A stretch of 63,737 bases of DNA, filler included, from Guillardia theta CCMP2712 (Eukaryota > Protista > Cryptophyta), in NCBI RefSeq assembly GCF_000315625.1. It is 5 parts of 5 records of this genome, joined end to end, with 100 filler letters (N's around TTAATTAATTAA, not from the genome) between each part and the next. Parts side by side here need not be neighbours in the genome. Positions count along the whole stretch, not along the records: positions 53,996 to 59,766 come from NW_005434422.1; 4 more parts are not named here. The stretch is one strand, 5' to 3'. The position numbers and the translations under genes were made by a program. Positions 6,418 through 60,158 of the stretch are shown here, one piece after another. A model generated the notes under the pieces. It searched no databases and was not told where the DNA came from. It saw nothing but the letters and a program-made list of their open reading frames with translations. How positions within the stretch are numbered: position 1 is the stretch's first letter; each line of letters begins with the position of its first letter.

Positions 6418-7401
6418 AACTCCTTCCTTTGCGTCTTGCCTGAACTGAAAAAAAATCCTCCTCAGGAAAGAGTGTATCAGGTTTGTGCAAATTCCTTCTA
6501 GGGTGAGGACAATGGCTGGCGAGTGCTGCCCTCTGACTGGTAGCTCAGATGCATTCTCCCGAGCTACGATGGCCGACGATGAGACCCAAGAGCAAAATCG
6601 CGCGCGAGACGATAGCAGACTCGGCAAGCTCAAGAGAGACTTTGACCCGTCGACAGGGTTCACGGGACGTGCCTTCCCGTCCTCCGCCCTCCAAGTTGAA
6701 CTTGAAACAGTCAGAGAAGGCTCTGAGGTGATCTGCCTCACATCCTGAACATGTCCTTGCATCTCAATTTCTGTCTGCTCCGGTCATTCTTGTTGACGGC
6801 AGCAATGAAACTTGAGCTGCTGAGCAAGACGCGAAGGCTGACGAAACAGCCTCGCACACATCAATCTGATCAGCCGTATCCTCGCTGAGATATGCAATCA
6901 GCAGTGCTCGAATCGATACATTCCTTTCGGCCTTCGGCTGTCATGGTTTTGCTTGCGGTAGAGATGGATATGCTGCTCCAGAAACGACGTAAGAGCCTAC
7001 CGCTGAAATTTTTTGCCTCCGATTAGCATTACACATGGAGAGCAACATTGAGATTAAAACAAAACTGCCAGTGACATCACATAACTTTGAACTCTGTGGG
7101 TCACATCACTTTGACTTCAATCCCTCTGTCATCGCATGTTTGTTTTGTAGTGAAATCGCTGTTAGGGTTGAGTACAATTGATGCAGTACCGGTACTGTGT
7201 GCGTTCAAAAGTGGGGTGGTGGGATACCACACGGGGATTGCGATTCAACATGGCGGGTTAGGTATCTGACAGACACTTTCCTTGTCCCCCCTCCCCCCCC
7301 CACCACCTCCTTCTCCTTCTCCTGCTCGTTTCCCTCCTCCTCCTTCTCCTCCTCCTCCTCCTTCAACCACCCCGCCTACCCCTCTCTCCCCCCTCCTTCC
7401 C

Positions 7402-53995: not shown

Positions 53996-54894
53996 GACCG
54001 GTCACGGCCGCCCGGAGAGATCAGGCCCCCGGCCAATCTCCGGACACTTAGCCTCCTTGGCGGGCCTCCAGGGGGTTTGAGGCGGGCTTGAAGCCTGCAG
54101 TCGGTCTACTGACCGGCCCGGCCGGCAGGATCCGTCGAGAAACAGGGGGGTCAAGGGAGCTTTTCTTCCCCCTGGGAGAAATGTCCTATGGGTTTTTGGA
54201 TCTGCGATATAAAAAAGTCTTGTCTCGGTCACGTGATGTGTCACGTGACCGGTCAGGTGAGCCTGTCAGCCGGGTCACGGACCCTGTCAGCCGGCTGACA
54301 TGTCACGGGCCTGCTGACACGGTCCGCTGACCGGTCACGGCCGCCCGGAGAGATCAGGCCCCCGGCCAATCTCCGGACACTTAGCCTCCTGGCGGGCCTC
54401 CAGGGGGTCTGAGGCGGGGCTGAAGGCTGCAGTCGGTCTACTGACCGGCCCGGCCGGCAGGATCCGTCGAGAAACAGGGGGGTCAAGGGAGGTTTTCTTC
54501 CCATAGCGTTGCTTTTCTCAATTGACCTTAGCGCTCTAAAACGTTTCGCTGTGAGGGTGGTAAATTCAAATCCACATATACCACGCCTCAAGTGGGGGCG
54601 GGGTGGGTCTTCACGATTCAAATCACGAAGAGCCAAGCAAGAGTTTTTAGGGGTAGGGTCCTACTTACATACAATTTCTTGGTACCAGTTGGTACAGTCC
54701 GAAACATGTGACTTTGGTACTCTCGGGGTACCATTCGGGGTTCTCCCCTAGGTATTGTACACATCCGGTACAAATATAACCCCACCCCCATGAAAAACTT
54801 CAAGCATGCTGGTTGAATTGCTTCATCCCTTGAACCTGGGGCCTGTCCGATCAAATCATATGGGCATACATAAGAAAACTGCAAGCCTGTGTGG
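53996..54894 (+). repeat. Left copy of long direct repeat (partial + full 331-bp unit, then ~395-bp tail)
   Basis: 54169-54894 is near-identical to 59040-59765 (offset 4871). The partial first unit carries several substitutions. Confidence 0.95.
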
Positions 54895-55123
54895 GGGTTC
54901 GGCCTGATACAATATGCATTTGCATGAGAAGGGGTGTTGTCCCCGTACTTGCACACAGTGGGAAAAGAAGGGGTACTTGACAAGGTATGATGGAGGCGGC
55001 GAGGGAAGGCGGCGAGCCTTTACCTGAGCGCCAGGATCATGGTGCTAAGCTGCCTCACCGGCGACAAGCTTCAGCCCTTGGAGAGCGCAGGAGACGAGAA
55101 AGAGAACTCAGACTCAACAGAAA

Positions 55124-56821
55124 TCACTGAGCCTTGACACAACAGCAAACTGATTGCATGTTTCTGCACTTCAAGCAAATGTTCCTGAACGATTGGCAAC
55201 TGAGGTTGGCTTGAACTTCCATGCTCGTTATCTGCTTTTTCGTGAGGGGTTCGACCGCATCCGACCGGAACCTGTCCGATCGTTTCCGGTTACAACATGC
55301 CGTCTGCCCTCTACGATACGCAACTTTTCCAACCTCAAGATGCCGTTTCTCCATGGCTGTCATATTCAACAAACCAAGAGGAATCTTGTTCTGAATAAAA
55401 TATTTGAATTGCTCTGTCACATGCCCGGAAGCCAGAAAGTGCAGGTAAATTCCTTTGCAATAATCCAATCTATTTGTTTGATACCGCAAGAAGCGAGAGC
55501 TGGCCGTAGAAACCTCACAGGGCAAGATGTTGCCGATGCTGCGGCCTGATGAAGGCGATAGTCCTTTGGAAATTCCCTGAGCGGTGGTCTGCATTTGTTT
55601 CTCTGCCAGCCCAAAGTCCACGAGCAAGTACTTCTTGTTCCTTCTGTTGTAGAGGAAGTTATTCAATTTCACGTCTCGATGTATAATCCCGAGGGCATGT
55701 ACAGAGCGCAAAGCAACAAACAAATTCTTCATGTAGTGGGCAATCTCGCTCATGGTCAAATCTTTGACGTAAACCGAGGGCCTGTCATGTTCCAAGTATT
55801 CAAAAATCAAAGCCTGCTGCTCCTCGATAAGGATTATCCCATCAGGAGCCAGTGGCGGACATTTCACTATCTGTACAATGTTGGATTTTCCATTCAAGCT
55901 CGATATAAACCTTTGTTCCTCCTTGTACGCATCGAGTCTGTGAAATGGTAACAATCGTTTGATTGCTACTCGGCGACCATTTACCCTGTCGTAGGCCGCA
56001 TATACCTCCCCGAATGTTCCGGATCCAACCATTCTTGTTATGTCAAACTGCTTTTCCACTTCATTGAGAAACCGCATGTCCACTGGGTAGATCATCAGCT
56101 CTTCTCGTATTGAGTTTTTCTTGCGTGCAGTGCCATTGTTGCCTTTGGTCAATGACATGTCCTTGTGTGCACCCTCTTGATCCAGCGATTCATCGCATGC
56201 CATGCCATTGTTGCCTTTGGTCAATGACATGTCCTTGTGTGCACCCTCTTGATCCAGCGATTCATCGCATGCCATGCCATTGTTGCCTTTGGTCAATGAC
56301 ATGTCCTTGTGTGCACCCTCTTGATCCAGCGATTCATCGCATGCCATGCCATTGTTGCCTTTGGTCAATGACATGTCCTTGTGTGCACCCTCTTGATCCA
56401 GCGATTCATCGCATGCCATGCCATTGTTGCCTTTGGTCAATGACATGTCAGGCCTGTGTTGCAATCCAAGCTGGTGGAAGCTCTGCATCCTCTCTGGTAC
56501 CTCACCTCTTTCGTCCTCCATACTGTGACGTGCCGGTTGTTCTTTGTTGTCTTTGGTCAATGACATGTCAGGCCTGTGTTGCAATCCAAGGTTGTGCGCC
56601 GGTCCTTCTTCCGTCTTTGCCGGCGTCATGTTAAATTGTTTCATACTCCTATTCTTGACTTGACGTGCTGCATTGCTTGCGTTTCGTGCAGATTTTTGTT
56701 CCGGGGTTTCCAAACTCCTCTTCTTCTGTTGCCTCAATCTAGCATTTTTCCTCTTCCGTGCAAGTTTTTCTTCTTCTGTCCCCAACACTTCGTTGCCCTC
56801 CTTTTGCACTGTGAAGGGCAT
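55124..56821 (-). pseudogene. CDC7: N-terminal half of a Cdc7-type Ser/Thr kinase (subdomains I-VII), inverted relative to its C-terminal half
   Basis: VGSGTFGEVY, VAIKRL, FEYLEHD, YMKNLFVALRSVHALGIIHRDVKLNNFLYN..KYLLVDFGLAE, then a long insert ending in Cys-rich CLKC...CCCVK. Confidence 0.85.
56131..56448 (-). repeat. In-frame 72-bp (24-aa) tandem repeat, ~4.4 copies, in the kinase N-terminal extension
   Basis: DMSLTKGNNGMACDESLDQEGAHK repeated. Confidence 0.95.
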
Positions 56822-56857
56822 GCCATGCGTGACACACTAATAGCGTGACACACTAAT

Positions 56858-57663
56858 AAGGAGCAGCAGAAGCTAAAGTTGGCGCAGGTGATGGCGCAGG
56901 AGATGGCGAAGAGGCGGAGGTTGGGCGTGAGCAAGACGAACGCATCGGTGACAGTGAGGAACTCAGGGGTCAAATTCGAACGTCCAGTCAGTGTCAACCG
57001 CGCGGGAACTCGGGGATACCGAGCGCCAGAAGTGCTCATGGGCATGGAGTGCCAGACCACAGCAGTGGACGTGTGGGCTGCTGGTGTAGTACTGCTTACC
57101 CTGCTGTGCCGCACGACACACTTCCAGTGGTTCCAGTCCAACGACATAATCACGGCAATGATGGAAATCTACGGGTACGCTCTTTGTGTACCTTGGAAGT
57201 GCGCTTGCCTGACTGTCTGAGCAGCTTGCGCATGTACATCAAGAGCATGGATGCTGTGTGGAAGCAAAACTATGGGTATACGGGTAAGTACAGAGATAAG
57301 ATCAGAGATGTTATCGAAGATTTCAAGCTCGACGTTAAGGTAAAATTGTTGTCGTCGGCGTTGTTGTATCAAGAGGATGAGGATGAGGGTGATATGGAGG
57401 CGGGAGGCCTGAGGTTGCTAATTTGATGTCATTCAGATTCCACCATTGGACCTGCATCTCAGCTATGCCCGTGGTTTGAAGCAAACATGGCGGACCTTGT
57501 CAAGCTCCCTGGGCGCGGATGCGGATGCAAGGCTGGGCTGGAGGTGGAGGAGAAACATGCGATCTGGGACTTCCTCAACCGCTGCCTCGACATCGATCCT
57601 CGCACGAGAATGACAGCAGAGGAGGCTCTGAAGCATCCCTTCCTGGTTAGTGCTGAACCCTAA
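56858..57663 (+). pseudogene. CDC7: C-terminal half of the Cdc7-type kinase (subdomains VIII-XI) with two introns
   Basis: VNRAGTRGYRAPEVLM...QTTAVDVWAAGVVLL, ...WDFLNRCLDIDPRTRMTAEEALKHPFL. Introns at ~57176-57223 and ~57340-57437. Confidence 0.85.
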
Positions 57664-58708
57664 ACCGTCTCTACCCGTAGCTTTCTCCTTCCTCTCCTCN
57701 NNNNNNNNNNNNNNNNNNNNNNNNNNNNNNNNNNNNNNNNNNNNNNNNNNNNNNNNNNNNNNNNNNNNNNNNNNNNNNNNNNNNNNNNNNNNNNNNNNNG
57801 GTCTTGAGTAAACAGTCTCTCCTCCGGCATCTCCTCTCGCATCGATCAGGCATATCAAACTAGCCTGGCCTCCCAGGCGTCCATTTCCCTTCCAACCCCT
57901 CCCCTCTCCTTCCCCCAGCCTCTCAAACCGCAATCATGGCAAAGCAACAGGAAGTCTCTTGAAATATGTTTCATATTCAACCGACGAAGCCTTCAGGTAA
58001 AGGAAGCTAGGGCGTCAACACAACAAGGAGAATCGAATTTCCTTTATATCTTCGAAGGTTGCTTCTCTGATCGGTTCCCTTCATGTTTCCCTTCTTCTGG
58101 AAGTGATCAACCATGACCTATAGCTGATGAGTGCTTTGGTACGCAAGTGCAAATTTCGATGCATACCTTACACATTCAACCTACTATAGGTGTGATTCTC
58201 AGCCAAGAATTGAGCTGTTTGATCTCAGTACTTGCCTTGCACTTTCAGAAGTTAGCATTGAGGGGCCATGGTCCTTGACTGCGCTCAGCAGCTGATCAAA
58301 CAGTCCCTGAGTACATTGGGAGTAGTGGGATAGGGAAGAGACGAGGCAAGTGTGAGGTCGTCTACAAGTGTTTTAGATTTGTACGAGAAGTTTGCACTAC
58401 CCCCTACCCCTCAACACGGGCTGGAGGCCGTTGGAAAGATTCAAATCATTTGAATACCTACCCCGAGCCACCTCATGATTATTTAGTCAACTATACACGC
58501 CTATTCATATCAAATAGAGGAAGGTTTTGCTCAACATTGCCCTTCTTGTCTTGAATGGACCGGCAGCCCTGGCAACGAAAAAGGTACATAAATTGACGGA
58601 GCAAACATTTTTGGTCAATTTTCTCTTGCCGCTTGAATTTGACTAAAACTACTACGAGAACCACCCTGGTTAACTGATCCGAAAAGGGTACGGAACGGCA
58701 ACGCTATG

Positions 58709-59765
58709 CCCCTGGGAGAAATGTCCTATGGGTTTTTGGATCTGCGATATAAAAAAGTCTTGTCTCGGTCACGTGATGTGTCACGTGACCGGTCAGGTGA
58801 GCCTGTCAGCCGGGTCACGGACCCTGTCAGCCGGCTGACATGTCACGGGCCTGCTGACACGGTCCGCTGACCGGTCACGGCCGCCCGGAGAGATCAGGCC
58901 CCCGGCCAATCTCCGGACACTTAGCCTCCTGGCGGGCCTCCAGGGGGTCTGAGGCGGGGCTGAAGGCTGCAGTCGGTCTACTGACCGGCCCGGCCGGCAG
59001 GATCCGTCGAGAAACAGGGGGGTCAAGGGAGGTTTTCTTCCCCTGGGAGAAATGTCCTATGGGTTTTTGGATCTGCGATATAAAAAAGTCTTGTCTCGGT
59101 CACGTGATGTGTCACGTGACCGGTCAGGTGAGCCTGTCAGCCGGGTCACGGACCCTGTCAGCCGGCTGACATGTCACGGGCCTGCTGACACGGTCCGCTG
59201 ACCGGTCACGGCCGCCCGGAGAGATCAGGCCCCCGGCCAATCTCCGGACACTTAGCCTCCTGGCGGGCCTCCAGGGGGTCTGAGGCGGGGCTGAAGGCTG
59301 CAGTCGGTCTACTGACCGGCCCGGCCGGCAGGATCCGTCGAGAAACAGGGGGGTCAAGGGAGGTTTTCTTCCCATAGCGTTGCTTTTCTCAATTGACCTT
59401 AGCGCTCTAAAACGTTTCGCTGTGAGGGTGGTAAATTCAAATCCACATATACCACGCCTCAAGTGGGGGCGGGGTGGGTCTTCACGATTCAAATCACGAA
59501 GAGCCAAGCAAGAGTTTTTAGGGGTAGGGTCCTACTTACATACAATTTCTTGGTACCAGTTGGTACAGTCCGAAACATGTGACTTTGGTACTCTCGGGGT
59601 ACCATTCGGGGTTCTCCCCTAGGTATTGTACACATCCGGTACAAATATAACCCCACCCCCATGAAAAACTTCAAGCATGCTGGTTGAATTGCTTCATCCC
59701 TTGAACCTGGGGCCTGTCCGATCAAATCATATGGGCATACATAAGAAAACTGCAAGCCTGTGTGG
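58709..59765 (+). repeat. Right copy of long direct repeat (2 x 331-bp units + tail), ends at gap
   Basis: Units start at ~58709 and ~59040; the tail matches 54501-54894. Confidence 0.95.
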
Positions 59766-60158
59766 TNNNNNNNNNNNNNNNNNNNNNNNNNNNNNNNNNN
59801 NNNNNNNNNNTTAATTAATTAANNNNNNNNNNNNNNNNNNNNNNNNNNNNNNNNNNNNNNNNNNNNGCATCCGCCCCGAGGATAGTCGTAGGTTCCCCCA
59901 CCAATTAATTAAAAACTGCATAAGGAGAAGAAGTGTTAATAAAATGTTTGATGAAGCTGTGTGGCAGTTGAGAGGAGTTTGAAGAAGGGAAGGAGTGAGC
60001 AGGAGATGGGCTATTACGAGACTCACCATCTAAGTTACCAGAAATCTGGTGGTACAACTACCTCCTCCTCCCTCCCTTCTCCCCCCCCCCCCCCTCTCTC
60101 CTCCTCTCCTCCTCTCCTCCTCCTCCTCCTCCTCTCTGGTCTCAATCTCTTGTTACCA

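Follow-up and report, generated by a model that had tools for sequence, protein, structure and literature searches.

The kinase locus and its annotation

The window, by which we mean the whole stretch of 63,737 nucleotides of Guillardia theta CCMP2712 DNA that was analyzed (assembly GCF_000315625.1; five genome parts joined by filler), carries a Cdc7-like protein kinase gene whose two halves lie on opposite strands. The locus occupies the segment 53996-59766, which represents the terminal 5,771 bp of scaffold JH993216.1 (66,777 bp) and borders, on its inner side, a gap of 1,129 N beyond which lie arrays of a 331-bp satellite and more gaps. The minus-strand open reading frame (ORF) 55127-56821 corresponds to an annotated 565-aa protein of this scaffold, and its best protein match is GUITHDRAFT_116856 of the same strain. 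The Pfam Pkinase profile matched this ORF over profile positions 3-151, the plus-strand stretch 56861-57175 over positions 155-207, and the plus-strand stretch 57487-57660 over positions 235-263. A single kinase domain is thus divided between the DFG and APE motifs with its halves head to head, as an earlier reading of the sequence (the original prediction) had described. Bacterial-type ORF starts (GTG/TTG) were disregarded, as this is a eukaryotic, intron-containing genome. Neither an Rfam scan nor a tRNA scan of the segment gave a hit.

To define the parts of the locus and their breakpoints (Table 1), positions were compared against four sequences: the sister copy L001 on the 270-kb scaffold JH993065; the 4.8-kb contig L002, which contains two convergent genes, P0005 (868 aa) and orf383; the colinear kinase copy L003; and the mRNA L004. 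We refer to the DNA holding the P0005 transposase gene and orf383 as element X. L002 and L003 originate from the ENA assembly ERZ930071, which is labelled as a metagenome, and represent undeleted and unrearranged versions of the same genes (full transposase plus orf383, and colinear kinase, respectively); the element X parts are 99.7% identical to those in the window.

Table 1. Features of the segment 53996-59766 (positions of the window) and the three junctions J1-J3
Feature	Position	Strand	Details
331-bp satellite	53996-54501		~1.5 units
Element X part A (end region)	54502-55118	+	99.7% identical to L002 4741-4125; includes the orf383 start at 54990
J1	55115-55118		1,071 bp deleted within element X (L002 3054-4124), removing most of orf383
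Transposase gene remnant	55124-55477	-	last ~117 codons and TGA (55124-6) of P0005 (~residues 750-868)
J2	55477/55478		transposase remnant to broken 3' end of kinase 5' half; 1-bp microhomology
Flipped kinase 5' segment	55478-56858	-	1.38 kb; Pfam; homology to L001/L003
72-bp tandem repeat	56131-56449	-	4.4 copies; codes for a 24-aa repeat in the N-terminal region
J3	56858/56859		leader of flipped half to first base of kinase 3' half; 2-3 bp microhomology (AAG)
Kinase 3' half, exon A	56859-57174	+	rest of insert, APE, subdomains VIII-IX
Introns of 3' half	57175-57224 and 57340-57436	+	both sites common to intact L006
Kinase 3' half, exon B	57225-57339	+
Last kinase exon	57437-57663	+	1-bp deletion in G run, 57523-4
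Scaffold gap	57700-57799		100 N
DNA 3' of kinase	57800-58708	+	common to sister L001, 99.2%
331-bp satellite	58709-59372		two units
Second copy of element X part A	59373-59766	+	start of next unit; unit period 4,871 bp; scaffold end

The flipped 5' segment comprises a 37-bp leader, the ATG at 56821, the N-terminal region, and subdomains I-VII up to the post-DFG insert. The stretch 55477-56858 aligns to L003 1949-784 and to L001 with 96.5-99.8% identity (99.7% to L001 and 96.5-99.4% to L003 for the flipped segment itself), and its leader contains two of the 16-bp repeats that are present in three copies in both L001 and L003. From 56859 onward the plus strand aligns to L003 from about position 1950 with 82-95% identity, exon A being only 80-82% identical to every other copy. 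The number of N-terminal coding repeats varies within the family, with more 72-bp units in L001 (6373-6771) and fewer in L003 (1193-1303) than in the window, and with 69-bp units in a further paralogue (L006:7257-7560).

The identity of the kinase was assessed with the intact paralogue P0003, which scored 146 bits against the solved structure of human CDC7, 119 bits against yeast Cdc7, and 90 bits against CK2; the named database matches of the kinase are also Cdc7. On the strength of these comparisons, the Cdc7 assignment made in the original prediction stands. The family resembles Cdc7 (the Hsk1/DDK catalytic subunit) in these structure matches and in its long insert between DFG and APE, which spans ~75-95 residues in P0003 and in the colinear copy P0002 and which contains the break in the window. 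Unlike Cdc7 kinases, the window copy is split, chimeric, and frameshifted, and the G. theta family is multi-copy, carries N-terminal 69/72-bp coding repeats, and lies between satellite arrays.

Junctions and origin of the rearrangement

Element X is both deleted and truncated in the window. At its left end, residues 1-31 of orf383 are matched with 100% identity in part A. The following stretch 55115-55477 corresponds to L002 3053-2691 with 99.7% nucleotide identity and encodes a transposase remnant of ~92% amino-acid identity to P0005, which retains only H764, H770, E794, and the Cys-rich tail. J2 falls in codon 449 of the annotated 565-aa ORF, and the annotated 'protein' is, as judged from these alignments, a chimera of a kinase N-lobe and a transposase tail. 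At the opposite end of the flipped segment, the homology to L001 and L003 stops exactly at J3, so that the right-hand boundary given in the original prediction coincides with a true breakpoint.

The kinase 5' half ends in ...GCGGTATCAAA and the 3' half starts with (A)AGGAGCAG, while the colinear copy reads GCGGAATGAAAAGGAGCAG. The halves adjoin at the same colinear nucleotide (within 0-3 bp) and are therefore the opposite edges of a single break at which no sequence was lost. In L001, and likewise in L002 and L003 taken together, part A of element X is followed by forward orf383, reverse P0005, upstream DNA of ~0.9 kb (region U), the 16-bp repeats, and the forward kinase. The order in the window is element X part A, the P0005 tail, the flipped 16-bp repeats with the kinase 5' half, and the kinase 3' half. 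Relative to the colinear copies, the window lacks the 5' portion of P0005 (~2.7 kb) and region U, which amounts to ~3.6 kb in total.

Contigs of separate DNA sequencing runs, including X1 (2011), X3 (2021), and X16 (2023), and reads of the RNA run X21 were aligned to the segment. All three junctions lie inside a single gap-free contig of the assembly (53996-57699). A 660-bp contig from X1 and a 661-bp contig from X3 span 54861/2-55521 with zero differences, crossing J1 and J2 and reaching 44 bases past J2. A 384-bp contig from X16 spans 56576-56959 across J3, also with zero differences, and four of four sampled 31-mers across J3 were present in X16 only. The X3 contig across J1 and J2 had a depth of 59.9, compared with 162-209 for the contigs of the kinase 5' half, which fits a single copy versus about three known copies. 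This contig is unbranched and of single-copy depth, which suggests that the intact version seen in L002 and L003 may belong to another strain or population. Since the 2012 assembly cannot have been built from runs made in 2021 and 2023, a misassembly, which the original prediction had listed among its explanations, is unlikely. The JGI metagenome contigs contained no exact match to 30-/31-mers spanning J3 and J2, a result that is uninformative either way.

Taken together, the obtained data make it likely that the locus is a real, rearranged pseudogene of a Cdc7-like kinase that arose through a complex deletion-inversion with at least three breaks. One break would have hit the transposase gene, a second the 16-bp repeats ~37 bp before the kinase ATG, and a third the insert that separates DFG from APE. 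The piece of 1.38 kb bearing the kinase 5' half would then have been re-ligated in reverse, with the loss of ~3.6 kb, namely the 5' three-quarters of the transposase gene and the DNA upstream of the kinase. The 1-3 bp microhomology at the joins would be as expected of multi-break end-joining or replicative template switching. A second, later deletion would very improbably have stopped at the precise position of the kinase break, and we therefore infer one event rather than a series. The locus resembles known complex deletion-inversions attributed to multi-break end joining or to fork stalling and template switching/microhomology-mediated break-induced replication (FoSTeS/MMBIR) in its three breakpoints, inverted segment, adjacent loss, and short microhomology. 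It differs from such cases in that the mechanism is proposed here from junction sequences alone, no intermediate or unrearranged orthologous allele having been recovered from the same strain. The original prediction of a microhomology-mediated inactivating inversion was thus right as to inactivation and the microhomology-type joins, but the event was probably a deletion-inversion with at least three breaks and not a simple inversion.

Several observations weigh against this interpretation. The ancestral order was deduced from sister and paralogous copies and not from an orthologous unrearranged locus. Whereas the kinase 5' half shares 96-99.8% identity with L001 and L003, exon A reaches 80-82% with every other copy; such unequal divergence points to a mosaic family in which a more complicated history is possible. 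Beyond the assembly, J3 is backed by a single run (X16, depth 4.4), and the X1 and X3 contigs are uninformative there, as they have holes at 56930-57149. Finally, ~6% of one RNA run was read, and low-level transcription of the locus is therefore possible.

The unequal divergence of the two halves would also be expected if they were independent fragments of different paralogues, separately truncated and adjacent by chance. However, exon A is ~80% identical between all lineages, which marks it as a fast-evolving or mosaic region, and the halves meet at the same colinear nucleotide within 0-3 bp, a coincidence that would be very unlikely for separate truncations. We therefore regard independent fragments as improbable. 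An assembly or cloning artefact, for instance a chimeric clone that left the head-to-head order only in the 2012 Sanger-era scaffold, is a still poorer explanation and in our judgment very improbable. The multi-copy nature of the family and the position at a scaffold end amid satellite arrays and N gaps are circumstances in which such an error could occur, and no X1 or X3 contig visibly spans J3, the J3 words being absent from both runs. The junctions were nevertheless rebuilt independently, J1 and J2 in X1 and X3 and J3 in X16, and this base-for-base recurrence across runs is not expected of an artefact.

Probable inactivation of the window copy, and the intact paralogues

The window copy of the kinase appears to be dead. 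The 5' ORF ends in transposase sequence, and only 37 bp separate its ATG from J3; the 3' half lacks an upstream region. The 1-bp deletion in the last exon is unique to the window copy, the G being retained in four other copies, and the shifted frame terminates early at 57611-3, so that subdomain XI is lost. With the halves on opposite strands, one of them fused to a transposase tail and the other frameshifted, the locus contains no continuous and complete catalytic domain. All RNA reads from X21 over the 5' half carried paralogue variants, and in the ~6% of the run that was read none bridged J2 or J3. Intact colinear paralogues are present on three scaffolds (L006, L007, and L008), as the original prediction had advised checking; the mRNA L004 matches L006 with 99.9% identity, and database records include a 463-aa protein from a G. 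theta transcript.

A functional arrangement, either an invertible switch or a two-piece kinase made from divergent transcripts or by trans-splicing, was also raised in the original prediction. Both halves do have open exons with intact catalytic motifs (HRD and DFG in one, APE in the other), an in-frame ATG is present at 56891, and a few RNA reads fall on 56930-57039. The frameshifted last exon, the chimeric 5' ORF, and the 37 bp left upstream of its ATG argue against such a role, as do the expressed intact paralogues. No inverted repeats flank the segment, the repeat listing of the segment having no inverted pair at 55477 and 56858, and neither RNA reads nor contigs reveal a junction transcript or the other orientation. 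Among the contigs, no joint in the alternative orientation was found, although contigs drop rare variants and colinear paralogues confound the comparison. The locus resembles Hin/Gin or shufflon-type switches in that a gene segment is inverted relative to the rest of the gene; unlike them, it lacks inverted repeats at its flanks and an active recombinase nearby, the reads show no second orientation, and the host is a eukaryotic alga. We consider a functional arrangement extremely unlikely.

The simple, precise two-break inversion of 55132-56861 (1.73 kb) originally proposed, with a native Cys-rich insert and leader and with a reversal that would restore one reading frame, is contradicted by the homology map and scarcely credible: its frame arithmetic is correct and its boundary motifs CCTT (55132-5) and AAGG (56858-61) are present, but 55132 lies inside the unbroken 99.7% homology to the 3' end of the unrelated 868-aa gene, which ends at that gene's own stop, and the kinase already stops at 55477/8. 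The motifs are away from the real junction pair and carry no weight. The flipped part measures 1.38 kb and is joined at its outer end to the transposase remnant, so that the left flank is the transposase 3' end and not region U, which is present upstream of the kinase in L001 and L003. The supposed Cys-rich Cdc7 insert (VCCCVK...) is the C-terminus of P0005, and the colinear paralogues read ...STRSSRNEK/EQEKL... without such an insert; the in-frame VK/EQQ join is a coincidence of entering the last codons of another gene. The plus-strand leader (~55039) lies inside the first codons of orf383, a part of the same element, in another reading frame. Since ~3.6 kb is missing, flipping the segment back would not restore the gene, and the 3' half would remain frameshifted.

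The sister copy L001:5964-7539, which is annotated as GUITHDRAFT_116856, has a 675-bp deletion extending from just after HRD to the last intron and is also dead. The gene model treats this deletion as an intron, yielding a 482-aa 'kinase' that lacks the region from DFG to subdomain X. Both this model and the public 565-aa model of JH993216 are unfit for use as Cdc7 orthologues. Contigs from X1 and X3 (at ~900 and ~700 depth in X3) and RNA reads skip 36 bp (55552-55589) and 62 bp (57265-57328) of the window sequence and show fixed variants as well (for example 55622 G>A), an indication that additional paralogue classes, more abundant or expressed, exist besides the loci compared here. At 56380-56599, the first mates of X21 reads map to the opposite strand relative to those at 55500-55719, and all of them carry variants, suggesting transcripts of paralogues or of another repeat family that are antisense to the N-terminal repeat region.

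The transposase family and the satellite-flanked neighbourhood

The split itself is ordinary, and the transposase family found next to it is the more notable by-product of the analysis. Only 21 relatives of P0005 (full length at L002:438-3044) were found in a set of 1.84 billion representative proteins; homologues lie at L006:3286-5907, L008:3757-6378, L010:9001-10941, and L009:847-3150. The core of its AlphaFold model has a pLDDT of 75-95, and the top 49 PDB matches of the model are all RAG1, HzTransib, or BbRAGL chains (best E value 2.3e-7), with the next match at 0.18. The family alignment conserves D352, D464, E794, C484/C487, and H764/H770. We take this DDE and zinc-ligand spacing to resemble that of mouse RAG1 (D600, D708, E962, C727/C730, and H937/H942), the resemblance being one of spacing. 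No Pfam (RAG1 models included) or PDB sequence match of P0005 to RAG1 or Transib was obtained. These sequence searches yielded coiled-coil noise alone; a weak leucine-zipper match to the P element among it (E value 0.08) was rejected as non-specific. Word-based homologue searches with P0005 and orf383 returned the query alone.

The modeled fold and the conserved residues suggest that the P0005 family is a diverged cryptophyte lineage of RAG1/Transib-like transposases. It resembles RAG1, Transib, and RAGL (ProtoRAG) in its predicted fold and in its DDE and C2/H2 pattern, but differs from them in having no match to the Pfam RAG1 models. Terminal inverted repeats and 5-bp target duplications of element X were not found; the ends of the element are undefined, its copies running directly into satellites and gaps. 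A unicellular alga with RAG1-like genes has already been described, in a paper whose main text does not mention Guillardia (PMC9435367). A RAG1/Transib-fold family that is invisible to Pfam and lies beside Cdc7-like kinases in satellite-flanked units of a cryptophyte would contribute a further lineage to the debate on how RAG1-like transposases evolved early on in unicellular eukaryotes.

The convergent partner gene orf383 (L002:3102-4253, minus strand) is also maintained, as a distant homologue at L006:5923-6756 (minus strand) keeps the tail-to-tail position. The structure model of orf383 was unusable (pLDDT 35); language-model features and a WFYR-type motif seen by eye provide a lead that the protein may be BAH-like. 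The partner does not look like RAG2, and a RAG2-like role, considered because of the convergent arrangement, was dropped for lack of support.

The intact repeated unit consists of the 331-bp satellite, element X (the transposase and the second gene), the Cdc7-like kinase, and again the satellite, which flanks every copy of the transposase/kinase unit. Satellite arrays adjoin L005 (6901-14059), L006 (10191-13187), L007, and L008 (31-657 and from 10797 onward). L006, L007, and L008 contain units of ~10 kb each between such arrays, in which a transposase 23.5% identical to P0005 and a small ORF 22% identical to orf383 accompany the kinase, the transposase/small-gene pair being reversed relative to the kinase. 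In L006, a ~400-bp direct repeat (2016-2423 and 6805-7223; 99% identity over 259 nt; 4,789-bp spacing) brackets the transposase/small-gene pair; no terminal inverted repeats were found in the L006-type unit. The kinases near the transposase-like gene of L010 are not Cdc7-like, and this cluster was therefore not counted for linkage.

The recurrence of these three genes raises the possibility that the transposase, the convergent BAH-like gene, and the Cdc7-like kinase form one functional or mobile unit with two subfamilies, whose transposases are only 23% identical but which always lie between 331-bp satellite arrays, and that the deletion-inversion was a by-product of aberrant transposase cleavage. 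We consider this unlikely; if true, it would define a cryptophyte transposon lineage that carries a chromatin reader and a replication-type kinase. The kinase may be cargo of the element or may simply have been amplified alongside it. The 331-bp sequence had a summed depth of ~1.4 million in X3, compared with ~60 for unique sequence, and is thus probably a major satellite of G. theta; several scaffolds end in it.

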